Source: Zygnema circumcarinatum SAG 698-1b (taxonomy: Eukaryota; Plantae; Zygnematophyceae). Taken from it: a DNA stretch of 64,000 bases. Shown one piece after another: positions 860 to 64,000 of the stretch. The translations under genes and the position numbers were made by a program. The notes under the pieces are model-generated. The model searched no databases and had not been told where the DNA came from. It saw only the letters and a list, made by a program, of their open reading frames with translations. The DNA is taken from positions 2,170,001-2,234,000 of the forward strand of contig CM074808.1 of the NCBI GenBank assembly GCA_037447605.1, written 5' to 3'. Numbering within the stretch: the first letter of the stretch is position 1; the number at the start of each line of letters is the position of its first letter.

Positions 860-3800
860 AAAGTACTTAAAAATTGGCTTATCGGCTCAAGCCGGTTGGA
901 GTTTGCAGCTCCTGCAGTATGGGACAATCTATCAGGGAAGTTTTATGCTGCTCTGAGGACTTCTCCAGGGAGCACAAGACTCGTAACTTGGAGCCTTACG
1001 GACACAGTACATTTGTGTGACCTTCCTGAACATGCAACCATTTCTTCAGATGTGCACTCTCTTCACCCTCTTGGTGCATCAGATAGTCGTTCTCAAGACA
1101 CAAACACAGCAGGTGAGTTCTACCTCCAACTTCACCGCTCACTGCCATGCCTGCGCCAGCTTAGTTCTCTGCAAATCGCTTTTTTGGACACAGCAGACAG
1201 ACTCTTTTCAAGCTTGGAAATGCATGACCATGGCTGAGTTGGAATAAGTTTGAACTGCCTTCTAGGACGGAGGCTATATTTTCATTATCCACAACTTGTT
1301 GTTTGTTACTCAGAACTGAGCTCGTTGCATTTACCTCTGTGTATCATACAGTTTTACATAGCTCTGGAGGCCTCTAGGTCCGTATAGACTGCTTGTGCTT
1401 GTTCCTGGCCCTATCTTTGGTACACAGCAGAACCTGTCGAAAGGACAGGAAGAGGGGTTTCTTTCCAGGCTCAACATAGAACCTCGCTCAGTTACACTTG
1501 GCTAACTGTCTACCTAAAGGCCTGCATTGTGGACCCGCCGTACACGTGATTCGCGCATGTTGGTTCCTTTAGACATTATCCCTTTAGACAGGTTTTTACT
1601 GTGTACGTGTGCATGCTTTGTCATTCCCCTTCTGCTCCGATGGACACTTATGCAGTCAGGAAGATAGTCTTTCTTAAGACCCTTAAGAGTGGTCTACATC
1701 CGCAAGCTCGAAGTATGCCTCACACAAGACATGGCTGCCAGCTCCGCAGGTGCTCAGTTTCAGGCGAGTGGTGGAGTTCTTGTTGTGGTCCCAAACGCTT
1801 CCGTCGCTGTGTACGACTCCTCCCTTACGCGGATTGCTTCAATAGCTGTGCCGGAAAATGGGAACCGGCAAGCAGTGGAAGCGGTGGCATTGTCGCGGCT
1901 GCCAATAGGAATGGGAATAGGGCACACCTCAGAGGGCCAATGGAAACTTGCTGTTCTTGTGGCAGCAAGGGCTGGGAATGGAAGTGTTAAAGAGACAGAG
2001 ATGGGGCTTGGAGACTCATCTGAAATGGTTAGGAGAGTGGAGTTTTTCTGTGGTGGGGGGGCTCGAATGGAGGAGGGCGCGGCGGGAAGGGAGGGGAACA
2101 CTTATCCAATGCAGCGTTTGGGTTCAACGGTGCTTGGAGGACAAGACCGAGGGAAAATTTTGACTGCGTCCTATAATGAGGAGGGGCATTTGACGGTAAG
2201 TGCTTGGGTTTTGGTATGCCACAGATGTATCACAAAATAGTACTCCAGAGATGCGCTTGAACCACTTAAACTGGAGCACTACTTGTGTCTGGTGGTCTCA
2301 TACAGTGTAGGCCTTATTTCTGGCTTTGAAAATGCCTGTCATTTTGCAGCTTGTGATGTTCCGCCATGTTGTGCAGGTCATGTGGGCTGACGGGACGTGG
2401 AGTGTGCACAAATCAGCCGATTGGGCACAACCGGATGACGTCGGCAAAGCTTCCATTGAGGCCTATTCACGCAAGTTAACAGCATTTAGTTTGAACTCAG
2501 GCAGCACCGTCACATCGTCATCCAAAAAATCAAAGAAGCGAACCACACCTGCCAGTGAGGATGGTCGATCCGACGCCCTTGTAAATGCAGTTGTTGCATT
2601 GGTCGCAGTTCCGGGGACCGCTTATGTTGCTGCAGTGGGGAGGTGTAGAAACCGCACAGAAAAAATAGGGCATGAAGTTGCAAAAACTGCGGACGAAGTT
2701 GAGCTTCCTTCAGAAGGACTTGCTGTTGCAATACTTGACAGCAAGTATGGATGCGTGCACCTGCTTCAAGATTTGTTAGGGCAGACAGAAGAGAGAGTTG
2801 AATCGGGCGTTGGAAGGAGAGAAGGTGTGAGTGCATGCTGGGTGGGAGGTGAAGATGGTATCCTTGTAGTAGGGAGCACAGTGGTGGGAGTGCTGCAAAT
2901 AGAAGTGAATCTGCCTCCTTTATCACTTGCGGGGCTGCTGGGCTCCATGGCCCTTTTTGGAGGAAGGGCTGCTGAATCATGGCCGGGATTCTCCACTCAG
3001 GCAGCACAAGCAGGGACTGTATTGCTCGGCGAGGAAGAGGGAAACCGGCTTAGACGACCCCCCAGAGTCTCTATGCTGCGGTTGGATTTGAACGAGGTAA
3101 GGCGTAACGCAGGGCAAAAGGAGGAAGAGGATTGTGCGCAGCCAATGGTGACGGCGGAGAATGGGAGCGGGGATGCACCCATGGAGGAGGTGAGTGAGGA
3201 GAGAAGAGGGGAGGGGGCAAGCAGTGGTGTGCAGAGTAAAAATGAGGCTGCCGACGGAAGTAAGGGGAAAGGATTCAAAAAGAAGGCAGTGAAACTGGTG
3301 CGGGATCAGGCAGGTCAAGGAAAAGGGAAAGTAGTGAAGGGCAGAAAGAACGAAGAGAGTGGAACAAGGAAGGAGGGTGTTGAGTTGCGGCGAAAAGATG
3401 AGCTATGGGAAGGGGTCGATATTAAGACATGGGAGCACCTAGAGAAGGACTTGATTGCTAGTATAGAAGGGTTACGGGATATTACGTCCTTGGATTCCCT
3501 TTTAGTAGCAGTTAGATCTTATGTGGAGAAGTGCAGAAAGGTGAAACAGGAGTTACGATTGGGAGCCAATGCCAGATTGCGAGAAGGTGGAGGTAGTGTT
3601 AAAGACGTTAGGAATAATCACAATAATGATTGTGAAGACGGAGGGAAAGTGAATGGCTTAGCCAATGGACGAATTGAGGAGGAAGGTGACAGTGATGAAA
3701 TGGTAGATGATGATCCAAGTGGTCAGGAAGGGCTTCAAGGAAAGGGAGGTCCGGAGAAAAGTAGTAGGCAAGGAGAAAAATGGGAACAAATAAAGCGGTC

Positions 3801-4770
3801 TCGAGATTTTAGGGCGGCTGCGGAGTTTATGTCTCCCAGCTCAGCTGCTGTGATCGCATCATGGTGCCTGCACATGAAGTGCTGGGAATTGCTCCGCATG
3901 TTGGTTGATAATGGCCAGCTGACAGCAATGGAGTGCCCAGAGCTGGTAACTGAGTTGGTAAAAAACCATCAGTTGGGCATTCTGGAAGCGTTGCTTCTCC
4001 ACTACCCCGACTTGCCGCCATCAGACCTTACGCAGATTCTGCACTTCATTCTTAACTTGGATAATAAGGGGGCAGACGTGGACATAAGTAAACTAGTGAA
4101 GCGAAGGAAACGAATTGCAATGTCTGCAGTAGAAGCTTTGAGGAACGAGATCAATAACCGGAAAGTAGAGAAGGCCGTTGAGCAAGCTGCTGAAGCTGAA
4201 GTCGGCACTGTATTGAGGGAGAGTGATGTGGCGACCTGCGAAGGTGGACCTGGTTGGAGCATGACTACTACCAGAGCAATTATTGGCTCTGCAGCGGTGG
4301 ATGGTTTTACGCCGTCTGAACTCAGCTTGCATGCCTTGATTGCAGTGCGGCAGGACGAGGTTATCTTGGCAACTGCAATAGCGGAACTGGATTCTTCTGA
4401 GGTCGCTGGGCTCGCTAAGTACTTGAGAAAATGGATGGAGAAGTTTACCAGTCGATTGTGTGCTGTCCCTTTGTCTGCCCTGCACGGAAAAAACCACAAG
4501 TTTCCTGTGCCCCGGTTGAAACAGGTGATTGCGTGGACAGCAGTGCTCCTAGACTGTCACTTGGCGCGGCTTGTGCTATTGCCAGAGGTTTTTCAAGACC
4601 TGATGAAGCTGCAGGAGTGTGTGGCAAGCCAGATGGCGATGGCATGCTCATTGGCTCCCTTGACAGGAATGCTTGATCACATTCAACGGGGGGCGCCTTT
4701 GCCAGAAAAGCAATCTGGGCCGAATAGCAGCGAGAAAATGTATTCGGTGGAGCTTGTGGACTGGAGCTGA
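860..4770 (+). CDS. NOL11: NOL11/Utp8-like small-subunit processome (UtpA) protein, 5'-partial; exons 860-1112, 1729-2195, 2377-4770
   Basis: C-terminus VPRLKQVIAWTAVLLDCHLARLVLLPE...MYSVELVDWS resembles the remembered human NOL11 C-terminus (PTLNQIMDWICLLLDANF...LYSIEVLELF); N-part QKVLKNW...PAVWDNLSGKF resembles NOL11 QKPLGSW...PAVCNFQTGEY. GT-AG introns 1113-1728 (phase 1) and 2196-2376 (phase 0) keep frame. Start exon not identified. Confidence 0.75.
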
Positions 4771-5244
4771 CGACCTTATTGGATGCCCATGAAGGGCTTA
4801 CACGTTTGACAGATGAGGCCATGCCGCCTTGTTCTCTCCATCGCCTATTCATTATGGCCTGTGGTATGGCGTCGCGGCTGCCCCTCTCCTCATGAAAACT
4901 TCAACCTGCTATTCCGGATGGGATTCAGAAAGGGTGCCCATTATCCATTTGATGCGAACACTTGCCATCAAAGGCCAAGAGGATCCCCGAGCATTTTTGC
5001 CTTGAAGTTTGCCCAAGATTTCCATTGACTGCCATCCATTGGCGTTCCATAACTAAGTGGTAGGGCCAGAAGGCCCAGAGATTAGGTCGGACGAGGAAAT
5101 GCGTCCAAGGCGCACCAGCTGAGCGTTCATTCACTATGGCTCTCTTATTGGTTCGCGCGTCTGTAACGTGTGGACAGACTGCACTGCTGTCACCTATGAG
5201 AGCTTCTTCCCAGCCGTGCCCGCAAGGGCAGAAAATTATTTTTT

Positions 5245-5640
5245 TCAAGTTTTAGTTTTCTCTCTCCTATATCTCACCGTCCTCTTTATATCTCTTTCTC
5301 TCCCTCTCTCCTTTTCTTTGTCTCTAGTTATGTTTCTTTCTTTGTGAATTTTCTTACGCTCCCCACTTGCCTCATATCTCTCACTTTTCTCTCTTCCTTG
5401 GTGTCCTCTATCTCGCTCTTCCTCTGCTCTCTCTCTCTCTCTCTTTTTTTTGCCGCCACATCTCTTTGTTTGTCCTCTCCCCCTCCCCCCCACCAATCAT
5501 CTACATCTATCTGTTCTTGAATTTTGCTCCCTACAACTCAATCTCATTTCCCATATTTCTCTCATTCTCTCTTTCTCTTTCTCTTTCCCTTTCTTTTTGG
5601 TAATTTGTCCCTCTGTCTCTCTTCCCACTTCTCCTCCCTT
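5245..5640. repeat. CT-rich low-complexity/polypyrimidine tract between the convergent 3' ends of NOL11 and NOP53
   Basis: About 400 bp dominated by C/T on the + strand, including (CT)n runs near 5428-5443. Confidence 0.8.
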
Positions 5641-6204
5641 CCCACCCCCATCGGGTGTACTCAACCCTGAGGCAGTTAAAAAATTGCAAAAGTCTTTCAG
5701 TACCTACCCTGTTTCACGTGCTTTGTGAATGTCTATGAAACTTTTGTCTTATGAGTTAAAAGCTACTCAGTACGTCGAACATGTGTTATGTATTGCCTGG
5801 TATATCCATCTATCAGCAACACCCTCCACAATAGAGGTCAGGACATAACACCACCACTGAATATGGGGCGGAAAATCTTAGGGCCCTGGTTTTCAAGCGA
5901 TTTAAATGTACATCGGATTCTTCACAGAGAAAGAGACTACCTGGTTTGCTCGTACTACCGACCCGTATCTCGTTCTGTCGCAAATGCTGCCTTAGTGTAT
6001 GGCTAAAAAGAACCTGAAGCACAATAGCTATGGCCAGGCGGAGTAGAAAAGGCATGGCCATAGTGAAAGATGATAGGAGCATAGATCCGGGTTAACCGCG
6101 AGGTGACTGAAAGTCGACCGCAGAGTTGTACCTTTCAAAACACACTTGTGCATTCTCCACATTTCGGAACACCATATTTGAGGATGAGGAAGGCCTCCAG
6201 CAAG

Positions 6205-9200
6205 TCATTCAAGCACTGTGAGCTGCACGCCACTCTTGGCGGCGCGTCTATCTAGCATCTCTTGATGCAGCTCGCGCTCCCGCCGGCCTCGGCTGCCCTG
6301 CTCCACCAATCGCCTGTTCTGTGCCTTTTTCCGCCTGCAAACAATTAGCCGTACAGTCAGTTACGAGCGCACAAACCATGTGAGAATGGCCTCTCCTGTC
6401 AGGCAATTTACTTTCTCTGGTAGGTGAAATGGGAGTGCAGCCAAAGGAGAATCCAAGATTCATATTTCACTCGTGATTTGAACCCAGAAAGACACGCCTT
6501 AATGAACTTTAACCGAAAAGGAGCTTCCAAAAACAGTGTTCCGCTAATAGCTTTTCTTTCGTTGCTAGGTCATTTGTGACTGTTTTTCCTTGGTTCTCCA
6601 TTTTGTTTTTGACTATATACATTTGATGCCATCGCCGTCGTGAGATCAATGCCAATTCATTTCTCTTTTCCGAATCCCAACGACTCTAGCTAGAATCACA
6701 TTTTTGCCTTCCCACCCCTCCCCACCCAAAAGACAAACTGATAACCACAAGCACAAAAGCGACCTGAAAATTGAACCACCATCAGAGAGCGCTTTCATGG
6801 TTGCTGACCTGGCAGGAAGTCGCGGCTCCACTAATCCGCGGCGCTGAAGGCTCTTAAAGCGCTCTCTCACAAGTGTGTCACAACCCTGCAACAGAAGGGC
6901 TCCACTCAGAGGATACTCCAACCAAGGAAGAGCTGATGTGCAGCCGACCTTCCAGCGACTCACCCTTAATCTCCTATAAAAGACGAAAGCTTCCTCATCA
7001 TTTTGAATTTTTTTGACCTTCCAATTCGATTGAAAGGCATTACGGGTCCATCTTTAGTTATTCAAGCTTTCAACTGAGAGGTAGGAATACGTCATGGATT
7101 ATCTTATATGAGAAGGCATATTGCAGACTCGGCAGACAGATATGGAGCCCACGCTGGGGAGCCAAAGGTGAACCCAGGAACAGCACAACAGGCAAAAGGA
7201 GCTAACTGACCTGCATGAGCACAGACAGCAGACAAGGGAGGGGGAGGAGGTGATGATGGCAGGCGATAGCTGAGAAGTAAGAATTGCCTGGGAGAGAAAC
7301 GACGATACCCACCTTAAGTGTGCGCAGCGATCCTGTCACCTCTTCTGTGAGGAGAACCTTCATTGTCTCAGGCTCAAATCTGCCACCGTAACAACACCAT
7401 TGCCACCTTAGCATACTTGCACAAAGACAACTGTCTTTACTTACACCAGAAAGCACGCCTAAGAATGCTTCACATGCTTCATCTGTCTGCACTGCAGCTC
7501 TGCCATGCAGACTCTCCAGAAGAGCAGGCGAGTCATCACCTGTGCCGGCCGAGTCTGGGCGGCACTGAGGCTTGCTTCTCCTGGCGAGCCACTTCTTTCC
7601 GTAGACATCGATTCTCCGCCAACTTCTTCTCGTCCTCCACCTCTGCTTCAAGCTCTTTTAGTCTGCCCATCACCATCACAATGAATATGATTAAGAGGCA
7701 GACAAAGGCAGCCTTTCTTAGATAATCTTCTCTATTTCGCGCACTTTGAAAGGCGTCAAAAAGCATTTTTTTTATCAGACATTTATATGTAAGGTTGTTA
7801 TTATGCACAAGGTCACTACCTGTCAACTTCAGTATACACCTCTAACTCAATGCTAAATCACAGGATGGCAGAAATTGAACTGATTGAACACCTAGCAATG
7901 TCGTTCCGCAGCTTCTTAGAGTCCGCTGCTTTCTTATGTGCTGCTTCTGCCGCGCGCTTTCGTAATCGCCGATTCAGATCAGCTCTCGTCAACTTCTTCA
8001 CGCGAACAGGTCTAAAGCCGCCCCCCAAAACGCAACACAATAGCTCCCGTCATCAGCAATTTCTAAGCTAGAGATGCAAAATATCATTCAGGAAAAGGCG
8101 TGGCTTGGGCCGCCCTCCCATAGGGCGAAGGTGCCACCTGGCAATCCCAGCCGAGGATGTGCCTTCTCCTGCCTCGTCCTCGTCCACATCCTCATTGTCA
8201 CCACCAACATCCAAGAAGAACCTCTGCCATCCAAAAAAAAAGCCCAAATCTCCCATTTGAAACCATCCCACAGAGGTCACACTACCACATGGCGAACAGG
8301 TGTCTGGCCCTTGAGTAGAAGCATATTCCGATTCAAAAAACTGCATTAGACTTGACGAAGTAGGCAAAATCGACTAAAGGTCAAAAACACTTGATCTCAC
8401 TATATGCAGGGCCATCCACCCCGCATGTTTAGGTAACATAAACGTGCTTACGACCTCCTATGACACCATTTGTTCACTAGTGAGCATTACAAACTCACCT
8501 CCCCCTCCTCCAGCTCCCTCCCGTCTGCCTGCAGCAGTAGTTGTGGAGCCTCAGGCTGCAGCTCCTTGGCATATTCTCGCCGCATTTCAAGGGCCACAGC
8601 CTCACCCAGAGCCTCCTGCATGTGCTCACACTACCATCTCTACATCAACTCTATTTCACAGAACTCTTGCCAAACCATCTTCTTAATAGACAACACTGTA
8701 ACCTACAGGCAAGGGCCATTGTTCAAGGACGTACTTTAAGAAAAGGATTCACAGATTCAGAGTGATGGCCCGTTTTTGTGTAAATTGCAAGGTTACATGT
8801 TTTGGTTGAAGTTCGTCAGATACGACCCCTTTCGAAGGTGATGCAGGTGGAAAAGTAAAAAGACTGCCAGTTCGCCATAAGTTTATTACTACTTCAACCA
8901 CTTACGTAGAACACTCTTCAGATGAAAAAACAAGGCTGCAAAACTAAAAAATACCGCATAATGGCTGCTAAATAGCAGAGGTTTGACAGAATCCTTTACC
9001 TGATGGTCGTGAAAAGTGGGATTGTAGGAGCAACCAGGAGCATCAATCTCCACTGCTGCTGCTGCCAAATGCTTCTTCTCTGTGCGTAACTCAGTTCCTG
9101 CCCTCGCCTTAGTTTTCTTTACCGGCTGCTAGACCATCTCCCGTAGAAACGGAATCGTCAATGGTGAAACTCTCAGTAACAACTTCCCTCCATTTTGCAT

Positions 9201-11096
9201 CAGCCCCACATAATTTTGGTCCTGAATCTTCAAAAAGCACATACGCACAATAGAGGAATAGACTCCCCTCTGCCTACGCTACATTTGGGGCCAACTGAGC
9301 AAATACAACCAAAATCACCTTTAAACCATCTTGCCGCGCTCCATCTCCACCTTCTGCCCCAACGACAATTCCCAATAAGCCATTTTTCTTGCTCCTCTGG
9401 ACATAACACAAATTGTAACTAAAACAGTACGTTCGTATCATACTGTACTTGGAAAATGAACATTCCTTTAAATAACCTCAGTTCTAAAGTTTAGAACGCC
9501 TCTAGGTATTCAGATTTGGAATCCACGATATTTGCCCTCCTTTTTACCCTTAAAATGAAGCCACTGAACTGTCTATGGAAAATGTGTCACTCAGAGCCAT
9601 CTTGTGATTCAGCAGAAAGTTCAAGCATAAACTCGTTTGGTACAAAGCAACATGCGCTTACGAGGCATTTGAAATCCTATTTGCATGGTTAAGCAAAGTT
9701 ATAAGAAGGAAGGGACAACCTGCAACGGACCAAGGATCCGCTTCTCTCTTCCTCTTTTCTCCACTAACCTGGTCCATTGCCACCAAACATTATGATAGAC
9801 CTGAAGAGAAACGCTTTCTTAAAGGCAGTCTGTTCCAAGGGGTGGTCAATGTTAGTCATTTCTCCTTCGAAATGGAGCCAATTTTGCCATTTGTATTTGC
9901 TTTTTTGGCGTGAAGTTAAAATGAATAGATTGAGAAATATGGAACGGTCCATGCAGTTGGCAGCAAAAGAGTCTTCATGGTTAAGGACGAGCCTGGTCAA
10001 ACTCCCCCAATTTAAATCGTCAACCAGAAGCAGAATGAGTGGGCAATGTATGTGCCCAACTTTATCACCTCCGCAATGCAATCCTTTGTTATTTGGCCGA
10101 TTGTCCTTTTACTTGAAAGTCTTTACTAAATATTGGGCACAATGGAAGTTCAGAAAACGAAAATTTGACAAAAAATGTTTCGACGTGGGAATCTGGCTCA
10201 TCTGAAGTGACAATGCAATTGTCAGGGCGTAGGGCAAGAGCAACCACTCAATTTTCGCCTTCTTATGCGCCAAATGAGTTTTTTGGCTATAAAGCCACAA
10301 ACCACATTCAACAGTATGTGAAATTACAATGCTCAGCCAGGCTATGTAAAATGCGTTCTGCTAGATAAATTGTCTTTTACCGAAACAGTACAGAAAACGT
10401 TCAATTCATTCGTAAATTCACGTCGACAGCATGGTCTGAAGTCAACCACTTCACCTGGCTCCTAAGCCTTGCAGTGATATGAATCTTGAGAAGCATTTCC
10501 CAACCAAATCAAGGCAAAAAGTTCCACATTAAAATTGAGCGCGGGAAATTCTCGTGTCTCCTGGAATGAGCTGCATAACCTCGGCAAAGGTACAGGCTAT
10601 GAAAATTACCTCTTCTGAAGACGTCAAAGTTGACTTTTTCAACTTTACGGCCTTGGGTGGAAGCGCTGTCTCGCCATCTGGCGCACCCTTGCGGCGTTTA
10701 GGCCATAAGACAGGGGGAACAAGAGAGCCTCGCTGGAATGACGCCTCACAGTGCAAAACCTTCTTCCGAAATCGATCAACTTTTCGTCCAATTCGGGCAT
10801 CTGCAGGGAGGTCCGCATGTCAAAACAACTCCCCTTCCTCCTTCCTGAAAGGGAGGCCTTTCAAGCGACGTTTCACCAAATGCAGAGTTTACATTGACGC
10901 AAGAGCAGCGGGAGAAGGCGGGGTGCGGGCCACCTGCAGAAGTATCAAGGAAGAAGAGCGCATCATCAGGGAGGCTGCGCAGAGGGGCGGCGGTGCGCTC
11001 TTCCGCAAGCAGCTGCGCCTGCGCCGCTTCGTCTTGCTCCGCTGCCGCCGCAGCGCGCTGCCGCACCTTCGCGCTGCTCCGCCGCGCCTTCCCCAT
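6205..11096 (-). CDS. NOP53: Ribosome biogenesis protein NOP53 (GLTSCR2); exons 11096-10934, 10800-10610, [unresolved exon(s) 9130-10600], ~9129-9000, 8615-8499, 8223-8138, 8011-7892, 7652-7540, 7379-7313, 6885-6809, 6334-6205
   Basis: Hallmark NOP53 motifs LFFLDT, VEIDAPGCSYNPTFHDHQ, LGRHRFEPETMKVLLTEEVTGSLRTLK and TLVRERFKSLQRRGLVEPR; the resolved exons join through phase-consistent GT-AG introns; stop TGA at 6205-6207. Confidence 0.93.
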
Positions 11097-52702: not shown

Positions 52703-54519
52703 GCTGCCCTCATTCCTTCACGCACAGTGTTGTGGCTTCTTCGCAGTCGTAGGACATTCTTTTGATCCCTTTGAGAGCATGTACACACCTTAACATACTT
52801 TTTATCCAATTTGACTTTTACCATTTTGGTGAAACGCGATTCACTAATTCCTTGTATTTGGTTCGCCACGGCATTAGCTGTCGCCTGTCACTGCAGCCTA
52901 TTCGTTTTTTTTTTCTTTTCCCTCTTTTTCTTCGTACACATCAGGAGCGTAATGAGACCATCAAGCGCGCTTGGCCTGCATGTCGCATGTGCTTTGCATT
53001 CAAAGGAGCATTTTCTATTCCATGCTCCGACTCTGATACTTGCAACTTTTGCACATGGTCGTTGCAACTTTGCTTGGCGGCTGAACACGCTGATCTAGAG
53101 GAGTCTAGCATCAAGCTTTGTCCACTTTGAAGCGAATCACATCGCCCCTTGTACGCTGTGTAGTGGAGACATGCACTGCTATTCTCTGCGGCCCGGGTCG
53201 AAGGGGGGCGTGGAGAGTTTTGGCATCCAGTTCACCCTGCACAGCAGTCGGTCCTTCTGCATCGCGTACAGTAACTGAGCTGATTCTGCCAAAAAATCCT
53301 CGTTCGAGCTCCTTCGAAGTAGTGCACTGTCTATTCAACTATTTCTGTTCATGTGTAAGGACAGAGGTTGTACTAATTTTAATCAAATATTTTAGTTTCA
53401 GGTAATTGCTGAAAGTATTCTAGAAAACACCGGCGGAGAGATGTGGCGTGCACGAGAATGCTTCAATTGTGCGACTGCAAGTGCCTTGTTGTTGCCTCAA
53501 AGTGTGAACTGTTTTGCGCTAAACCATGAATTCCCGTCCCCCCTCCTCCCTCCCCTCTCCCCCCCTCCCCCTCTCGCTCTCCCTCTTCTCTCTCCCTCTC
53601 CCTCTCCCTCGCCCTCCCCGCCCGTCGCCCGTAGTTTCCTCCCTCCCGTACCGCCGTGTTGTGTCGTGTGACTCGTGTCGTGTCGTGTCTCCCGCTCTCC
53701 CTCTCTCCGCGGTGGCCGACGCAGGTCTCTGCCACGTCAGCCCTAATTTCTTGCCGGCGTGCACGCCGGCTGCCTCGCGAGCTGCGGCGCGCTGTCTGTA
53801 CGATTCCGCAAAACGACACGAACTGTACCGTCAGAAAGAAGCCACTACCGTACGGCACCGTTGTTCCGACGTGGCGGCGTATGATTGGTCGGAGATGACC
53901 TGGCAGATGTCGTGACCAGCCAGGCAGGGGGATGACCACATTGGCCAGGCCGCGTGTTGCTTCTTCTCGCTCGAGCGAGCGAGCGAGCCATGCGCGGCGG
54001 GGTGGTGTGGGGCGTGGCGGCGGCAAGCAGAGGGAGCGCCGCAGCAGCTCGCGGCAACGCAGCTTTGTTGCCTCCGTCCCCGGGTCCCTTCAACCGCCTG
54101 GCTGGCCGGCGGGGCTGCTGCCGCTGCTGCCGTCCGTCCGTCCGTCCGTCCGTCCGTCCGTACGTGCGTGCACATTCGCTGCTGCCATCCATCCATCCAT
54201 CCATCAGCGTGCGCGCGTGTGGTATGCTATGCATTCTGCCGATCCCTCCCCCGCCCCTCCCTCCCTCCTTGCCGCGGTGGACATTGGAATCGAACCGACG
54301 GCCCACCAGGGTACCCGAGGGGCGGACTTGTACGGACACCGCCCATGCCCATGACATGTCCCGCATCCGCATCATGCGCTCGCTGTACGGCGGGCGGGCG
54401 CGAATATGCGCGGTGACCGCGGTGACCGCGGTGACCGCGGTGCCCGCCCAGCGGCACGTCCGGTCGGTGGGTGCGCATCGTCCGTGCCGCCCGGACTCCG
54501 CCGGCCGGCCCCACCCAAC

Positions 54520-55100
54520 GCGCGCCACGTGGCCCGCGCCCGCCAATGGCCGCGCCGCGCCCCCCTCATCCGCTCCTCCCCGCTGGGCCCGTACCGCCGC
54601 CCGCCCGTCCGCCCGCCCGCCCGCCGGCTGGGCCCGTACGGCCGCCCCGCTTGCTAAGGAAAGCCCAGCGCCGCCATGCACGCGCGGGTGACACTCGCCA
54701 CCCGCGCCACGTGGCGGGCCTACGGAGATCTTTCCGGCGCCTGTCACTTGCCAGCCAATGCCCGCCGTCCCGCAGATGCCGGCCTGCGAGCGGGCCATTC
54801 CGCGGCCGCCACGTCTCCCCACCCGTCACGTGGCATAAAGCGTCCCACGAGCCACCAAAATGCGGCGCGTTTCGCGCAATGTCTCCGTCCGTACCGTACG
54901 GCTGCCGCATCAACGCGAATGTGCGGTCGTACGGCGGAGCGGCCGCGCGGCTGGCTCGAGACCGGGCGGCAGGGAATCTGCAACCACGTGGCGGCGATGC
55001 CCTGGCGGCGGTGGTCCACGTGGGCGTGCCGGCCGGTCGCAGCGGGGTGGGGGCAGCCACGTGACGGCGGCGGAGCGGAGGCCCGCCATTGGCCCGCGCG
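54520..55100. promoter_or_regulatory. G-box (CACGTG) cluster upstream of the bHLH gene
   Basis: CACGTG at 54526, 54708, 54827, 54985, 55017, 55058, plus GCCACGTC at 54808 and CCAAT boxes near 54542, 54754 and 55086 (reverse). Confidence 0.7.
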
Positions 55101-55373
55101 CGCCAGCGGCTTGCGGGGCGGACGGACGTGACGGACGGACGGAACGCGGGGGCGCGGCGGTCGCGGGTGCGGGGCCCCTCGCCCCTCCGTCCAGGTGCGG
55201 CGCACGGCGCCGGCGGGTCGCCTGTAGCGCGGGGCTACGGCCGGAGGGAGGAGGCTACAGGCGCGCGCCCGTTTGAGATCGGATGAGGCACGGCAGGGGG
55301 GCAAGGGTGAGACGAGGCGGCGGGCTGGAGGGGGAGGGCCGGAGGGAGGAGGAAGGGAGGACGAGGAGGAGGA

Positions 55374-55421
55374 GGGGCAGGGGCAGGGGCAGGGGCAGGG
55401 GCAGGGGCAGGGGCAGGGGCA
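55374..55421 (+). repeat. (GGGGCA)8 perfect hexamer repeat whose last A is the A of the bHLH ATG
   Basis: Direct reading of 55374-55421. Confidence 0.95.
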
Positions 55422-57123
55422 TGCAGACGGTAGCGCCACGAGCCATAGCCGCAGCGCCTCTTCAGACGGACATGCAGGTGGGCGCGCTGCCCGCGGGGGG
55501 CGGCTTCTCCTTCGGCATGTCGGTGCCGCAGTTCTACCAGCCCGGGTTGGCCTTCTCCTCGCCTGCACACCAGCAAGCGGGGCGGAACGCGGTCAACTCG
55601 TCCCGCACGGGCGTGTGCGCCTCGCGCCACATGGCGGCAGAGCAGAGACGACGTGCTCGCATCAATGAAAGGTACGCTGCGATTGGGGACCTTTTGCCAT
55701 GGCCGCCCTGCCATGTCACCGCCTTAGACCTTCGAACAGTGTCGCCGCTGCCTGCTTCTCGTGAAGTTAGGTTTGGTCACGAGAGCTGGCGGGATCGTCC
55801 TTGAGTTTCTCGACTGACAGTTGGCTTTGCCCGGCTGCAGGCTGGAGGCTCTCCGAACTCTGGTTCCGCACTCCGCCCGCGCCAACACTGCCGCCTTCTT
55901 AACGGAGGTTTTTGACTATATCACAGTCCTTCACAAGCAGCTGGAGAAGCTCGGTGGAGGTGTGATTGATCTAAACATTGCAGCCACGGAGGGAAAGGAA
56001 AGGCGCAAAAGTAGGAAAATGCATCATGCCGCAAAAGCCTCCTCCATCAGTCAAAAGCGTTCTCGCAGCAGCAAGAGTGATGAAGACGACGAAAGCGAGG
56101 TAGAATCTGAGTCAGAAGAAGGAGCTACCTCCCGAGATGTTAGTGAAGAAGATGCAGAACACAAACTTACGTTGAGCACTGTCTCCGTGCCCTCCCTCTT
56201 CGACCCCTCGATAAAGAAAGCTTCTCTATCCGAGAATCGTGCTGACACAACATTTCAAATCACCCAGGCGTCTGACACGAGTCCAAGGGCATATGGGCTG
56301 GAGTCGTCGAGCCGGTCTGCTTTCTCGCCTACTTGCTCCGCTGTTGCGGCTACTGGATCCGCAGCAGGTGGCAACATTGTGGGGGGGGTTGGATCTCTGA
56401 ACCCTAATGGCGACAACGTACAGAAGCGGATCAATTCCTGCGGCACCTGTGACACGCAGATGAATCTTGGAGTTGCGCCTCCGCAGGCTCTGGGCGCAAA
56501 AATCACGTGAGTATTTTAGGAGACTTCTCATGCTAGGCATGCTTCTTTCAGGAAAACTACGAGCTCCAAACTTGGAAATGCTGCATAGTCATGTCGAGTA
56601 AGGTGCTCTCTATTGTGGTTCTTCAACTGACTGCAGCGCTACTCCAGTCCGGGTTGTTGGTGTTCTTTTCCTGCACGTACACTTGTGCAAATCATTTGCT
56701 CGGAGGTTGAGCGACGGCATATGACGCCTCTGTTGTGAGCTCCTGTGCAGGCCGCGAGCCATCCATCCTGCGCCATACTCTCTACTCTCTGCTCTGCATC
56801 CTGGCGCCATGGCGGCTGCGGCAGCGGCCATGGCGGACGCGGCCGTGGCTGCGCAGTCATGGGGGATGGCCGCAGCGGTGGCGCAGGCGCAGGCGCAGGT
56901 GGCGGCGCAAGTGCACGCGCAGGCCATGGCGCAGCAGCAGCAGCAGCAGCAACAGCAACAACAACAACAACAACAGCAACAACAGCAGCGGTCCTGCGTC
57001 GCAGGGGTGGGGACAAGGAAACGCCGCAGGTCGGCACCGTTGGAGAACTGCGCTGCCAACCGTTCGGTATGGCGCTGTCTCTGCTTGCGAGCGGTGAACC
57101 TTGTGGAGTTCTTGCAGTATTAA
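55421..57123 (+). CDS. bHLH transcription factor, BIM-like (subfamily Va-like); exons 55421-55671, 55841-56506, 56751-57123 (3' end uncertain)
   Basis: SRHMAAEQRRRARINERLEALRTLVPHSARANTAAFLTEVFDYITVL resembles BIM SKHSVTEQRRRSKINER...DTASFLLEVIQY; phase-2 introns; donor AC|GTGAGT (56507) joins in frame to the poly-Ala/poly-Gln exon at 56751. An upstream in-frame ATG exists at 55283. Confidence 0.8.
56932..56988 (+). repeat. CAG/CAA repeat encoding Q19 in the bHLH third exon
   Basis: 19 consecutive CAG/CAA codons in frame with the spliced bHLH. Confidence 0.85.
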
Positions 57124-58817
57124 ATGCGTTTGGCAGGCATTGTTATCTTCTGTAGAGCCTTTTTCGTGACTCTTTAGGGTTACTGGTATTGTAGTGGATT
57201 GACTAGTCTTGTTTGTATTTTATGCCCTTCGTTTTCTTGCTTTTGAAGTCGGTTTTGCTTAGCATTCTTCTCCTGGATGCCCGTTCTGGAGGTATTGCGC
57301 ACTTGTTCGAGTGGCAGCGTGAGCACGACCTTGACCCTGGCTGTAGTGATGCGTGCAGGGTGTTGTGAGGCCAATCGCATTGAAGCCGCAACCCTAAAGT
57401 TTTCTACGTTAATCACAATTTTGGCGGAGACATCAGGACAGGAAGCATTTTGGATGAGGATTCAACAGTTTTGCGTGCAGCCCGCCAGAGGCGGCAGCCA
57501 ACCCTTTTGACCGAATGGGAGGAGTTCCCTGCGCAATTTTGCAGAGCAGCTGTTGCCAGCCCGGCCCCATCTGGCCGGGGGCGGCCTGCCGCGGGATTCA
57601 GTACAAATGCATTTTGAGGTGCTACTGCACAAGCAATTTTCATATTGGAGGTTTGCTCCTTTAGGATGTGACTATTCGAGTGTAAAGCAGCCTTTGTAGG
57701 CAAACATTTTTGTAGACCATACGCTGCTGAGTTGGTGTGCAGAGAAGGGAGAGACTACTGTGGCGAATGTTTTTAATTCAGGGAAGTTTTGTGAGCTGCT
57801 ACGTAGGCCTGCGTCCACATTTCGTCATCGCAGAAGATCTGGGAGGGGGCAGAGCAGCAGTGGAGAGGACAATTTTTGTGTGCAGGAGACAGCTTTAATG
57901 GGCTTGTGGAGGCTTTGATTTAAGACCAGGACACGTGCAGGGTTGTGAGAGACGACGGACTTTGGAAGTGAGAGATGTAGAGGGTTTTGGTAGTTCACAT
58001 CGACTTCTGCTGTGAATATTCGAGTTCAGAGAATAAAGTGGTTTTTTTTACCGAAATGTTATGTCCCGATCTGTTTTCTGTTACGGTGATGGTTACCATT
58101 GAAATGGTGATTTTGGAAGCCTGCTTGGACGAATGTGGCTGTGATGGTGCTGACTGACTGCAAGCTGTGCATCTGCTCTTTGCTATTTCGATGCATGTCC
58201 CCACTTTGCAATACCGACCTGCACTGTGGAGAAAGTTGGCGATCTCAATGTTGAAGGGTATGCAAGAAGATGTGCTAGCATCTGCGTGAAGTTCAATGCT
58301 GGGGCCTTCCAGTTTCAGGTGGAAACCGTCTGATCCCTCACCCGAGGGTGAATAACGCTTTGTCATTCCACTTTTTCAGTTGTAGTCCCAACTAACTCCG
58401 AAGGGAGAAGGGTCCGTGATGAAGCCACGCCAACCTAAACTGCAGTAATAGAAAACCCTATTCAGGCAAATGGTTGCTCGTGACTGTACAGCAAATGCTT
58501 GCAAGCGCAAGTGCTTTGTTGAAACCATACAGCAAAGCCGCTCACTCGGACTCTGAGGATCCATGGTCCAAAACGTCCAATGTCTAAAGGAGTTCCCATT
58601 GGGAAACATGTTGGGGGTCATGCACTCACGCCATCGCGGGCAATGCCATGCTCCGCTAAGGGCGCCAAGCGCCAAGAAGACGCGGGGCCGCGCCAGCAGC
58701 GCTGCGCAGAGGGCAATACCGCAAGCGCACTGAAGCAGAGAAGAGGAAGAGTAGAGAAAAGAGAAGAGTAGAGAACGAGGGACGAAGAAGAAGAGTGAAG
58801 GGGGCTTCCGGGGTGCC

Positions 58818-61800
58818 ATGCTCGCCCACGCGCTGCCCCTCGCGGGAGACCCGAGCGTGTTTTTCGCCATTGCATCTCCCGTATCCAGCATCGACGGGAG
58901 CGTCTTCCTCGCGGGAGGTGCTTCTTGGCAGACAGTTGGACCGGGGAGGAGGCGGCTGTCACAGCCTGCATATACATATTTCAGGGCTTACTGCAGCCAG
59001 GAGAAAAGCAATCGCAAAGACAGGGTGTTGGAATCAGACGTTTCGTCAGGGTCTCCCAGCCATGAAGGAAAAAAAGATCCTGAATTGAATAAGGCCACCA
59101 TTAGCCGAAGAAAAACAATATCTTCTCTTCCTGTGGCAGCGGGGGCCTTCGCAGGCGCGCAATTGTGTGGTGGTGCTGCTATTTTTAAGGCAGGGGCAAC
59201 AGGAGTAACTACTGCGAGGGAATTGGAGGTTCAGCGTGCTATAGGTACGGCTGTGGACGGACTGCGGAGCCGGCTAAGTTCATTCACGTTGTCTAATGGC
59301 ATGCGCTGGGTGGTGGTGGAGCGCCATAACGCGCCTATTGTGTCCTGCCACACATACGCAGATGTTGGTGCTTCTGATGAGGTGGATGGCCTCACAGGGC
59401 TTGCACATCTGCTGGTGCGTGGTGATTGCCTTCACCTTAGAAATTCTCCATGTGTTCTTGGAGATATTTTCGGTGGCCTGAATGACCTGTGCAACGCATG
59501 GCACACCTTTTGCTTTTTCCACAAAGTCTTTGCATTGTTTGGTTCATTCCTCTCTTTAGCAATGTAGGCTGCATAGCTGTCAGCGATGAAGCTTGATGTC
59601 TATGTTGAAAAGCATAAGAGAAAAAAAGACTTGATTTTGACATGACCATGCTTTCTAATTCCGGCCATTGAACAACATTTTGTTAGCTTTCGTGCAAACT
59701 TGCTAGTCAATGGATGCTACATGCATTTTCTGAGATACAAAACATCACGAGTGCTGATTGAAAATTCTACACATTGTTAACGAAAAGGAGCTAGGCATTT
59801 GTTCCACTGTTTCTTAGGTAGAATCTTGTTGTCACTTTGTTTCCTTTTATAGCTGGAGCTAAGAGCCCAAAAGTATATCCAATATCGAAAATGAGGTGTT
59901 TTCCTTATATTGATTTAACAACTGATTCGTTTCATAAACGCTGATTGTACGTCCGACTTCCCTTCACGCTGCACTTGCAGGAACATTTAGCGTTTAAGGG
60001 GACAACTCGAGTGGGGACGCGCGATCCTGTGGCAGAAGCAGCTGTGCTTGATCGCCTTGACGAAGGTGAGACAGAGGCAACGGATGGGCAAACTTCGCTG
60101 CCTTCTTGTGGCAGACCAAGAGCAAAGAAAGGCATACTAGCTGTACGCTATACACTGCATGCTATATACAGTTCAAAGAAAGTTATGATCCAGTTCGACT
60201 ACACGGGCTAATGCTTCGTTGGCACTTCCTTTAGCACTTACAGTTTAGTTTACCGAACCATGTCATTGGCTTTGTCAGCGTTCAGGGCCTGTGTTTGGCT
60301 AAGGTCAGCTCCTGCCATTTAAACCACTTTGACTGAATGAAGTTTGTATCACCTCATTGCTCTTTTTCTTTGGCCACCTTTGTTTCCTTATTAGATTTGA
60401 TTCCTCATCCCGTAGACTCTCTCGCTCTTTCCTTCCCCTCATCAGAGCACGTGGATCCCTTTCATCAGCATTTCCAATTCATTCCTAAGTCATATAGTTT
60501 TAGCCTTAAGTCAACGTAGGACTCACCAAGGAATGCCAGCAGCATTATGATACCTTTACAGTTTGGACAGCCGGCCAGAAACTGCCATCTCCCTTTCCAG
60601 TGCATAGCTATTGTCAGCTAACTAGTACGCTTTCAATGTTCGAGAGCTTTCCTTCATTGGTTAAAAAATGGTTAATGGTTATTAAGGCAAGGAGGGTCAG
60701 CGATGGAGTAAGTTGTGCTTTCCACATGGACAAATTCATAAGCATATTAGATGCAAGTTGACCTTCCCATATTGCTCGTTCTGTGAAGATTTAATGGTTT
60801 GCCTCATAATACAGCTCGATCAGAAGTAGGTTGTTTTCAGGGCTGTGCATGTTTTGCGTGCATTGGCTACATTATGTCTATCGTAAGGAGGTGCCATGTT
60901 GACAGAATAGGGCCTGCTCTCCTCGAGATTTTGACAGGGTGTGGTAATGTTCTGCTATCTTGTTGTACCAGTGTTCTATGAACGCCAGGAGGCACTCGCA
61001 AAGGGAAATTCAGCACTTGCTCGACGACTTTCTCAAGAGTTTGTGAGAACTTACTTGAGCCCTTCCGAACTAGCTGGACTGCCACAAGATTTGGAGGCCG
61101 CTTTCTTGAAACTCTTCTTAGAAGTCTTGTTTAGACTTCCCCTACTTTCTCCCTCAAAGTCGTGGTTACTGAAGCTTTCAGCCTTTCCACAACTCTATCC
61201 ATTTCTCTTCTGCACTGTCATTTCCTTCTATACTCTAATTTACCCGCTCTGAAGACTATTTTTGGAGCTTCTTCCAAGTCGCTGCTGGGAAAGGAGTCCC
61301 TTCCCGTATTCGGGTTGTTGGGAGCACTCTCTGAATTACCCCATTGCTTGGGTGACTAACGAAGCAGCAGAACAAACTGCATGTATTGAGCTTTCTGTCC
61401 TCTTATATGCAGTATATATTTTAGCCGTCCGCTGCTTGGTTGCTGCAAACTGATTTGGAAGTTGCCTTTGCCTGTTCTTGTGGTGGCAACATTCTGCTGA
61501 TTTAGAGAAGAGGACATGCTTGTGCCGATGAAGGGCCTATCCAGCCTTTACAGCGTCGTTCCCTGCACTGTGTGATGGACTGCAGGAGAAGCTGCAAGCC
61601 ATGGCTGCGGAGCTGGCCATTCCCAACGAATATGGAGCCCTGCTGGCAAGGCAGGGAGGGGTGGGCCTCAACGCACAAACGTCACAAGACTCCACCGGTG
61701 GGCACCTGCTCTCCCCTCTCATTGCTTACTCCAAAGCGTAAATGTTGTGAGCGGGCATGGGGTTTTTTTGTTGTGGTATCTGGCCTGTTAGTGGCTGGCG

Positions 61801-63863
61801 AGATACTCTGCAATAACGTATCTTAGTTTTACACATTGACAGTGCATGCTGTTGTTGGGAACATCAGCCCAATGCCTTGACTAGGCTTCGTGCATTCTGC
61901 AGAGTATTTTGTCTCTTTGCCCAGCAATAAGTTGGAGCTTTGGATGGCCTTGGAGAGTGGTCGATTTCGTCGCCCTGTATTTCGCCAACTATATGCTGAA
62001 AAGGAGGTGCTGCCTTCTCTCTGTGAGCGCTGCTGCTGGATGGCCTCTGTCTGGGAGAGATGAAGAGTTTGAGGAGTGAGGGGAAGGGTTTAAAGCAAGT
62101 GAAATGAGTAAGAAGAGCTCAAGCATAAGGAGGTGAGTGGGGTTGCGGCGAGCTTCTCAATAGCCGGTTATGTATTTGAACTGCCAGAAGCGAGCTCTAT
62201 CTCCACCGTAAAAGTGAGAGTACAGCCATGACAATGACAGTGACATTGTCAATAATGACTAGTCAAAGAACCTGATGAATCATTCAATCCTAATCCTTCG
62301 AACTCCTCTTCCTCTCAAGTCACTTGCTTGTTCAGGTCACTGTTTCACGAAGTAGACTAGTGCTGAATCCCGTTGTCACAGAGTTCTTTTCAGCTGATGT
62401 AGTGCTTGCTTGTCGTTTACGCCATATGGTGATGCTCACTCTCTCGCATCAGGTGGTGAGGGAGGAGCGTCGTCTGCGAGTGGACAATGCGCCGCTCGGC
62501 CGCTTCACTGAGGCCTTTGCAGCGACAGCTTTCCCCGGAACTGCCTATGGCCGACCTGTGATTGGCTATCGTATCCATGGATCCGATGTGATGTGCATGA
62601 GCGAGTGCTTAAGGATAGTGAAAGAAGTGAGAAAAGTTAGGTACTCAGAAAGTTTGTTCCTGCTATTGCAAGCTACAGCATTAGTGATCCATTAGTTACC
62701 CATTCATGTAGAAAGATGTAGAAGTATGGTTTTCTCGTGGCATTTGTCCAACACGCACTGCTGCTAGCAACGTCCACAGTCTTGCAAGAACCTTCGCCCC
62801 CCCCCCCCACCCTCCCCCTCATTGTATTCGTCATGCACAGGATAGAGGGCACAGTTTCTCTGTTGGAATGTATGATAGAAGACACGAGTTTATGCGTGTG
62901 CACATTCTGCACGAGTCATTCATGTGGGCTGCCTTGACCATCCGCTCTGCAGCGAATGACTTTGACAAGATTGGACGGCGAGAAGTGGACTCCTTCTTTC
63001 GCCAGTTCTACAATCCAATGTCCCTCATTTGTGCTGTGGTACAGCCTTCATTCTCTACTCTTCATTCTCATTCTTCTTCATTGGCGGATTATACAGTTAT
63101 GCACGCTTTTGCATACTCCCCATCACTGCCTTTCCTGACTTTCTCTTTCATCGGAAGTAGTGTTCGTCATTTCTGTTTCAAAAATCCCCTCAGCTCTCGT
63201 CGTCGTACTGCATTCTATCCCGCTGATATCCTCTTATTTTGCCCGTTCGGGTGGTGACCTTGTGCGGGAAGCAGGTGGGGGATGTGAATCCGGCAGAGGT
63301 GAAGTCTTTTAGCACCATCGCAGAAACTTTGGAAGATTCAAGAAGCTGAATGATGCCCCCCTGCAGCTGCTCATGGCGATGGGAGGGAGGCTGCAGGTGG
63401 AACGTATGGCTGTGCGCTACTTTGGGGATTGGCAGCCATCCATGGCTGCCCCCCTGCCCCCCCTGCAAGCTGTGCAAGAATGGGCGGGGCCACCTCAACG
63501 ACCTGCTGACGTCCCCAGTACGCTGCGAATGTCGCTTCCTGCCAGTCCCTTTTACATGGAAGGTGCGATTGCTTTCTCATATGGTCCACCAATAAACACT
63601 CTTAAGGATGAAGATGAGGGATGGAAGCATTTGCAGGGGACAAGTTAGAGCAATCCGATAGAAAATCCGGCGGAATTGTGTGTGTCCAATCCCAATCTCT
63701 ATTCTAGAAAGTTTCCATGCGCAAGGTCTTCCTGCTGACAGACATATCCTGTGCCTGAGCCGGTGCAGGATATTACCGTCCCAGTGCCGCATCAGCCGAC
63801 GACCCGGCGCTCTCTGTGCTCAGTTCCGTTCTGAGCGGCAGCCGCACCTCGCGCCTGTACAAG
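58818..63863 (+). CDS. Cyanobacterial-type M16 (insulinase/pitrilysin family) zinc peptidase, 3'-partial; exons 58818-59414, 59981-60065, 60972-61042, 61586-61697, 61903-62006, 62453-62570, 62953-63038, 63275-63298, 63397-63562, 63769-63863
   Basis: FTLSNGMRWVVVERHNAPIVSCHTYADVGASDEVDGLTGLAHLL|EHLAFKGTTRVGT (HxxEH zinc motif), GGVGLNAQTSQDST.YFVSLPSNKLELWMALES.RF..PVFRQLYAEKEVVREERRLRVDN, AVVGDVNPAEV, GYYRP...VLSGSRTSRLYK; nine phase-consistent GT-AG introns; continues past the window. Confidence 0.92.
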
Positions 63864-63916
63864 GTGCCGCGAGGGGCCGGGAGAAGAGGGGGGCCTCCTG
63901 CGGCACCTGCTGGCTG

Positions 63917-64000
63917 AGGGAGAGGGAGAGGGAGAGGGAGAGGGAGAGGGANNNNNNNNNNGGAGAGGGAGAGGGAGAGGGAGAGGGAGAGGGAGGGGGA
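63917..64000. repeat. (GGGAGA)n microsatellite interrupted by a 10-N assembly gap (63952-63961), in an M16 gene intron
   Basis: Direct reading of the sequence. Confidence 0.95.

Follow-up and report, generated by a model that had tools for sequence, protein, structure and literature searches.

A Zygnema circumcarinatum gene for the predicted Tat-routed catalytic subunit of a cyanobacterial-type M16B zinc peptidase

Which enzyme is encoded by the ten-exon gene segment at positions 58818-63863 of a 64,000-nucleotide stretch of the Zygnema circumcarinatum SAG 698-1b genome, and in which compartment would that enzyme act? The stretch (assembly GCA_037447605.1, contig CM074808.1, positions 2,170,001 to 2,234,000, forward strand) is called the window, and all positions below are counted from its first letter unless another contig is named. 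The initial annotation read the gene as an M16 zinc peptidase of cyanobacterial type that is routed to the thylakoid lumen by twin-arginine translocation (Tat), and the findings in this work support that reading. The gene is transcribed and spliced, and it keeps the zinc motif HxxEH and the downstream glutamate residues. It is probably an expressed nuclear gene for the catalytic subunit (A) of a heterodimeric M16B zinc peptidase that was derived from an exported cyanobacterial two-gene operon and that would be carried to the lumen by Tat.

The gene has 10 exons with 486 codons on the + strand within 58818-63863 and continues past the window end. All nine introns are GT..AG introns, and each of them is spliced out in transcript contigs of four public runs from three studies. 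Since the introns are removed in these contigs, the four runs represent transcriptomes, and they confirm both the expression of the gene and its splicing model. The contigs start at 58586, 58601, and 58622 and do not exhibit any splice up to 59413. Exon 1 is an open reading frame (ORF) at 58818-59414 that encodes 199 amino acids (aa). Its first residue (M1) is the sole methionine ahead of the M16 core, and the ORF list has no in-frame start farther upstream. With M1 as the only methionine before the core and with unspliced coverage of 58586-59413, the N-terminal extension must be translated. Beyond 63863, the transcript contigs carry letters absent from the window that code for NLVVPGKALS, so the gene runs on beyond the window end and beyond the gap of N letters at 63953-63962. 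The C-terminal third of the protein is encoded outside the window. Ortholog proteins are collinear with the window exon by exon in tblastn searches, where the highest summed exon-wise scores belong to a streptophyte-alga transcript, Marchantia, and Spirogloea. The features of the gene are as follows.

58586..58817 (+), 5' leader of the mRNA, with upstream ATGs at 58608, 58620, and 58643 (transcript contigs, ORF list)
58818-59414 (+), exon 1 (transcript contigs, ORF translation)
58818..59102 (+), aa 1-95, presumed stroma-targeting part and charged spacer (by position ahead of the arginine pair RR)
59103..59198 (+), predicted lumen-targeting domain of twin-arginine type: SRRK with RR at 59106-59111, hydrophobic region (h-region) at 59115-59186, K at 59187-59189, AGA at 59190-59198
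59280..59414 (+), start of the M16 N-domain (phmmer matches to PDB 4nnz and 3amj_C over aa 155-199; ortholog tblastn)
59981..60065 (+), exon 2, opening with the E-H of HxxEH at 59981-59986 (splice 59414/59981 in four runs)
60972..61042 (+), exon 3, part of a family-specific insertion of ~50 aa (splices in four runs)
61586..61697 (+), exon 4, ...GVGLNAQTSQDST (transcript splices, ortholog tblastn)
61903..62006 (+), exon 5, closing with E-K-E, where E321 is at 61998-62000
62453..62570 (+), exon 6, opening with VVREERR; the third zinc ligand is presumably E328 (62465-62467)
62953..63038 (+), exon 7, start of the M16_C domain (transcript splices, ortholog tblastn)
63275..63298 (+), exon 8, a micro-exon of 8 codons, VGDVNPAE (both flanking splices in four runs)
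63397..63562 (+), exon 9 (transcript splices, ortholog tblastn)
63769..63863 (+), exon 10, ending in ...SGSRTSRLYK, the start of the R-x6-Y position of other M16 proteins

The residues of a zinc peptidase are present in the spliced product. The inverted zinc motif HxxEH is H197-L-L|E-H201 (59406-59414 and 59981-59986), which is split by intron 1 and joined by a confirmed splice. The second motif, E321-K-E|V-V-R-E-E328-R-R, is split by intron 5, and its E-x6-E pattern aligns with the EKEV(I/V)xEERR of all A-family members. The spacing between the second histidine and the ligand glutamate is 127 residues, and it is the same in the orthologs, including the cyanobacterial ones. At the R-x6-Y (RY) position, the window protein reads SRLYK|NLVVPGKALS, which has neither the R nor the Y. 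Searches of Pfam and NCBIfam with nine separate exon peptides, which are too short as pieces, gave no significant match, and exon 10 gave a Pfam M16_C match that is weak and comes from the short exon pieces of the window only. The full-length orthologs have both PF00675 and PF05193. The best solved relatives, with the ortholog P0005 as query, are bacterial M16B proteins, namely 4nnz (E 6e-40) and the 'active subunit' SPH2681 (3amj_C, E 3e-38). The beta subunit of mitochondrial processing peptidase (MPP-beta) and core protein 1 match at E 1e-9 to 1e-6, compared with ~1e-40 for bacterial M16B.

The taxonomic distribution of the family was examined by searching the exon 1 peptide against a representative protein library, and the full-length matches were then named. 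Exon 1 has 640 matches, the best of which align through the RR segment and back to residues 73-95. The A orthologs of streptophyte algae are from Mesotaenium, Spirogloea, and Closterium. Those of bryophytes (liverworts and mosses) are from Marchantia and Sphagnum. The lycophyte Diphasiastrum and the ferns Ceratopteris and Adiantum also have A orthologs, as do many chlorophytes including Chlamydomonas (CHLRE_10g443850v5), Prasinoderma, the glaucophyte Cyanophora, and the haptophyte Diacronema. The cyanobacterial proteins are next closest, with 42-45% identity over the full length; outside the eukaryotes, no relatives are nearer than these single-chain M16B proteins, which have export signals. 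These relatives bear out the initial annotation, which had likened the catalytic part to cyanobacterial M16B proteins and not to MPP, SPP, or PreP. The maximum-likelihood tree of A exhibits the eukaryotes as one group beside the cyanobacteria, with a single split between them. A cyanobacterial origin of the A family is a well-supported reading, based on similarity and on the shared insertion in a sample with few other phyla. No seed plant is present for A among the best 120 matches of a lycophyte query (collection including NCBI nr), where ferns, bryophytes, and algae are present; an angiosperm loss had been suspected beforehand, and the clear angiosperm ortholog that would have spoken against the initial annotation did not turn up in this list.

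Long fused gene models of Closterium were also encountered in the family. They are fusions with unrelated neighbours (NOT2 and PAXNEB) and were rejected.

The part ahead of the catalytic domain bears on the compartment. About 155 residues precede the M16 core, which begins near aa 155 (SFTLSNGMRW). S-R-R-K is at aa 96-99. It is followed by the uncharged Ala/Gly-rich stretch TISSLPVAAGAFAGAQLCGGAAIF of 24 residues (aa 100-123), by K124, and by A-G-A at aa 125-127. These residues and their coordinates are exactly as the initial annotation had given them for an extension of ~150 aa. The h-region of the window protein has a maximum 12-residue Kyte-Doolittle mean of 1.57. When the window protein was aligned with 11 orthologs from algae to Cyanophora (12 sequences), no residues before the M16 core other than RR were invariant. 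RR together with a weakly hydrophobic uncharged stretch was identified in all 30 eukaryotic orthologs with a usable N-terminus, and the segment is conserved from the glaucophyte to the ferns. The initial annotation would have been refuted by orthologs that lack this segment, and the orthologs clearly show the opposite. Being the only invariant presequence pair in the alignment of 12 and present in 30 of 30 eukaryotic orthologs, the RR feature is conserved far more than chance would allow.

The eukaryotic orthologs exhibit the consensus [S/T]-R-R-x-[A/L/V]-L around RR, and their stretch mostly closes with a basic residue and an AxA-like site, at which the land-plant orthologs have ARAL, AQAL, or SRAL. 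The residues ahead of RR (40-220) are non-conserved in all orthologs. Hydrophobicity is lower in the h-regions of the eukaryotic orthologs than in the cyanobacterial signal peptides (means of 1.85 versus 2.43; Mann-Whitney p=1.7e-9), and RR lies beside the hydrophobic core in only 16 of 85 cyanobacterial sequences. Thylakoid Tat (delta-pH) signals are told apart from Sec signals by RR, a weak h-region, a basic residue in the c-region, an AxA site, and a variable N-terminal part ahead of these. Residence of the A subunit in the lumen through the Tat route is a well-supported prediction.

Three other explanations of the segment were weighed. The characterised organellar M16 enzymes are all of the MPP, SPP, and PreP kinds (PMC12731061), so the gene might encode a stromal or mitochondrial processing-type enzyme in which the RR and hydrophobic stretch are incidental. 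This is very improbable given the occurrence of RR and h-region in 30 of 30 orthologs, the exported cyanobacterial proteins as nearest relatives, and the E-values of 1e-9 for MPP-beta and core proteins versus 1e-40 for bacterial M16B. An identity as MPP, SPP, or PreP was dropped on sequence distance and on a length and architecture unlike those of SPP and PreP.

The same enzyme could also reside in the same compartment with an uncleaved segment. Inserted by Tat, as happens with the Rieske protein, the segment would then serve as a signal anchor that tethers the peptidase to the thylakoid membrane on its lumenal side. The 24 uncharged residues of the h-region are long enough for a membrane span, and the cyanobacterial relatives are often recovered from membrane fractions. 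We consider such an anchor unlikely: the h-region is Ala/Gly-rich and weakly hydrophobic (1.57), and small residues at -3/-1 (AGA, AxA) in most orthologs are the pattern of a cleaved lumen signal.

Equally unlikely in our judgement is an export to the envelope intermembrane space (the equivalent of the periplasm) or into the secretory path, with the segment as a Sec signal or a signal of endoplasmic reticulum (ER) type. Sec-like signals are present in most cyanobacterial orthologs, homologues in cyanobacteria have been reported in periplasm and extracellular fractions besides thylakoids, and the first 95 residues of the window protein are unlike a classical transit peptide. An ER signal would be N-terminal, whereas in every eukaryotic ortholog 95-230 residues separate the N-terminus from the hydrophobic segment. 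The invariant RR is left unexplained by a Sec or ER signal, and the plastid Tat machinery has been described in thylakoids.

The predicted lumen location has a cyanobacterial counterpart. In proximity labelling of the Synechococcus 7002 lumen, two exported M16 peptidases, pqqE (homologue of sll0915) and ymxG (homologue of slr1331), either of which may be the A ortholog, are among the most enriched proteins, together with PsbU, Psb32, and CtpA (PMC7880944).

A second subunit is suggested by the gene neighbourhoods of cyanobacteria. We have examined 80 cyanobacterial loci (L001-L080) for neighbours of the A ortholog, and 74 of them have a second M16 gene directly downstream on the same strand, from a few to ~300 bases away. 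This gene (B) consists of ~495-525 codons and encodes a protein with its own signal peptide and without HxxEH. The R-x6-Y motif GGRLFNEVRSRQGLAY is present in 58 of 60 cyanobacterial B proteins. In other M16 enzymes, this substrate-anchoring motif lies on the non-catalytic half. In a joint alignment, the A family, including its eukaryotic members, exhibits HxxEH, EKEVxxEERR, and LYK(S/N)LV..ALSA at the RY position, and the B family exhibits the reverse, with LFNEVRSRQGLAY at the RY position and without HxxEH. At the level of sequence comparison, it is shown that the RY motif missing from the A family is supplied by a separate B family of cyanobacteria, algae, bryophytes, and ferns. Adjacent A and B genes are the layout of a putative obligate A/B heterodimer. 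The B partner gene is newly recognised here for the A family, and it answers the expectation of the initial annotation that a dimer partner may exist elsewhere: it is the next operon gene in cyanobacteria and has eukaryotic orthologs. In one cyanobacterial locus (L019), the gene downstream of A seems to be split into the ORFs 7744-8835 and 8780-9319, possibly by a frameshift.

The eukaryotic B orthologs were identified through a metagenome contig. Searches with cyanobacterial B as query were swamped by cyanobacterial matches and showed no eukaryote. The contig L083 is of haptophyte type (Diacronema-like, with homeodomain, PP2C, and Rubisco-activase genes) and carries A and a second M16 gene head-to-head at 2261-5742 of that contig. 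The product of the second gene is of B type, without HxxEH and with GGRLFNEIRTKEALAY. With this protein as query, B orthologs were identified in Diacronema on the same scaffold as A, in Mesotaenium as the consecutive gene (A is ME000301S05092 and B is ME000301S05093), and in Spirogloea on scaffold s38, 12 kb after A on the same strand. Further B orthologs are from Klebsormidium, Closterium, two Marchantia species, Adiantum, many chlorophytes, and Cyanophora. No seed plant is present among the listed matches to this query; seed plants appear to have lost A as well as B. HxxEH is missing from all eukaryotic B orthologs, and most of them have the RY pattern. In most, a presequence is followed by a hydrophobic domain; RR ahead of this domain was seen in just Marchantia polymorpha and one Micractinium. 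In the B tree, eukaryotes and cyanobacteria are separated by a single split, with a Shimodaira-Hasegawa-like approximate likelihood ratio test (SH-aLRT) support of 97, and the internal groups are the same as in the A tree.

Linkage of the two genes varies among eukaryotes. A and B are unlinked in Marchantia, and no second M16 gene was identified within 10 kb of A in Chlamydomonas, in Marchantia, or in a Prasinoderma-like contig. The A-B neighbourhood in the haptophyte contig, Mesotaenium, and Spirogloea may be an operon relic or a selected co-regulation. By analogy with Mesotaenium and Spirogloea, the B gene of the Zygnema genome may lie just downstream of the window.

Several findings weigh against a Tat-routed lumenal A/B enzyme. 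With 9 acidic residues among the first 95, the N-terminal part is not a typical transit peptide, and the residues at +2/+3 after RR are T and I here versus F-L in the consensus. Most B proteins have a single arginine (often Q-R) before the hydrophobic domain, so A and B may differ in route, or RR may be a less strict requirement. The window itself contains no B gene: tblastn of eukaryotic B against all of it gave only weak cross-matches to the A gene. The absence of A and B from seed plants rests on two lists of the best 120 matches. The A tree was left with one real outgroup, since the intended long-branched metagenome outgroup fell inside the eukaryotic group. Older fractionation also places the pqqE/sll0915-type and ymxG/slr1331-type proteins in the periplasm (PMC7880944).

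With these points taken into account, the heterodimeric peptidase with a Tat-routed A subunit remains the explanation that we prefer, and it would work as follows. The precursor would enter the plastid by its first ~95 residues. S-R-R, the Ala/Gly stretch, K, and A-G-A would act as a twin-arginine signal by which the folded, zinc-loaded subunit would be carried across the thylakoid membrane into the lumen, and the signal would be cut off after AGA. In the lumen, A would pair with B into a closed clam-shell chamber. Other M16 'peptidasomes' suggest by analogy that short unfolded peptides would be degraded or trimmed in this chamber (PMC12731061). Likely substrates would be lumen signal peptides once they are cleaved off, as well as fragments from the action of Deg and CtpA. 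A wider scenario is put forward as tentative, and we lean somewhat against it: a complete cyanobacterial M16B 'peptidasome' would have been kept in the lumen of algae, bryophytes, and ferns as the counterpart of PreP for signal peptides and photosystem repair fragments. The A subunit would have been moved to Tat after endosymbiosis with B left Sec-like, the two genes would have stayed neighbours (A then B) in some close algal relatives of land plants, and the system would have been discarded in seed plants.

The lumen proteases Deg, CtpA, and thylakoid processing peptidase cut proteins, and we know of no enzyme that clears the peptides they leave. If the prediction is true, a conserved M16B heterodimer with a Tat signal would fill this gap in lumen peptide clearance. 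Heterodimeric M16B enzymes are known as such, and what would be new is the predicted setting, with an informative distribution from glaucophytes to ferns and no seed-plant copy found. As no seed-plant copy turned up, proteomics and genetics centred on Arabidopsis would have missed the A/B enzyme. No paper was found on any eukaryotic member, and the cyanobacterial members were found only in proteome listings. The literature search likewise found no functional study for Cre10.g443850, for sll0915, or for a lumen M16/insulinase enzyme, including in Chlamydomonas. The proteins are named 'hypothetical', 'zinc protease', or 'peptidase M16' in the databases, and a 2025 review of the M16 family nowhere mentions thylakoids, lumen, or cyanobacteria (PMC12731061). 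Tractable systems are Chlamydomonas (CHLRE_10g443850v5), Marchantia (P0173, MPTK2_7g09700), and Synechocystis (sll0915, slr1331). The family also offers evolutionary cases, which consist of a likely change of signal from Sec to Tat after endosymbiosis, transferred operon genes that have stayed together in the nuclear genomes of some species, and an apparent loss of both A and B in one plant lineage.

Other observations were made within and around the gene. The leader has possible upstream ORFs before the main start at 58818, which begin at the ATGs 58608 and 58620 (stop at 58731) and 58643 (stop at 58771). In intron 3 (61043-61585), a minor alternative donor at 61382 is joined to 61586 in run X2 only and would extend exon 3 by 340 bases. 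Unspliced intron sequence is also present as low-depth contigs in several runs. One contig of run X1 only joins 62393 back to 58730, either as an assembly chimera or as a back-joined form. A poly-C tract is present in intron 6 near 62797-62820, and a (GAGAGG)n microsatellite flanks the N gap at 63953-63962 on both sides within intron 10 (63900-64000).

Upstream of the peptidase gene, 54001-56510 (+) is a very GC-rich block, with a GC of 0.71 at 54-56 kb. Pfam gives a helix-loop-helix (HLH) DNA-binding domain for the ORF 55283-55801 (22.7 bits), and the ORF that follows, 55821-56507, carries on in the style of a basic HLH (bHLH) protein. The two ORFs are probably parts of one bHLH transcription-factor gene that is split by an intron and lies immediately upstream of the peptidase gene. 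Long trinucleotide repeats of CAG/GCA type are present at 56600-57150, where they read as poly-Q on the + strand and give poly-Cys/Ala ORFs on the - strand.

The predicted enzyme can be compared with known systems part by part. Its presequence is of the same bipartite form as those of the Tat lumen substrates PsbP and PsbQ, with S/T-R-R, a weak h-region, a basic c-region residue, and AxA. It differs from them in having a metallopeptidase as passenger, K-T-I after RR instead of x-F-L, and a Tat routing that is predicted from its letters. The same insertion is found in the exported cyanobacterial M16 proteins (pqqE/Sll0915 and ymxG/Slr1331, 'periplasmic processing proteases'), which also have signal peptides. 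Unlike eukaryotic A, their signals are mostly Sec-like with a higher h-region hydrophobicity, and their genes are in an A-B operon.

The alpha and beta subunits of MPP exhibit the same division of labour, in which an HxxEH subunit and a non-catalytic partner form one chamber. MPP is distant (E ~1e-9), has another origin and compartment, and cleaves targeting sequences from whole precursors. In function, the enzyme is probably most like PreP (M16C; stroma and mitochondria), whose closed M16 chamber removes free targeting peptides; PreP differs in being a single chain of ~1000 residues, in acting outside the lumen, and in being present in seed plants.

The closest parallels are the heterodimeric bacterial M16B peptidases SPH2681/SPH2682 of Sphingomonas sp. 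A1 (PDB 3amj) and TTHA1264/TTHA1265 of Thermus. Among the solved relatives, the active subunit SPH2681 ranks second, behind the uncharacterised 4nnz, and is the best characterised. The A/B pair would resemble both systems in its half clam-shells of ~50 kDa, and it resembles them in having HxxEH in one subunit only and in the adjacency of the bacterial genes (PMC12731061). Unlike these systems, the A family has an insertion of ~50 residues with a His-Glu spacing of 127 versus 76 (the latter from PMC12731061), both A and B carry export signals, and the eukaryotic A and B are nuclear genes with bipartite presequences.

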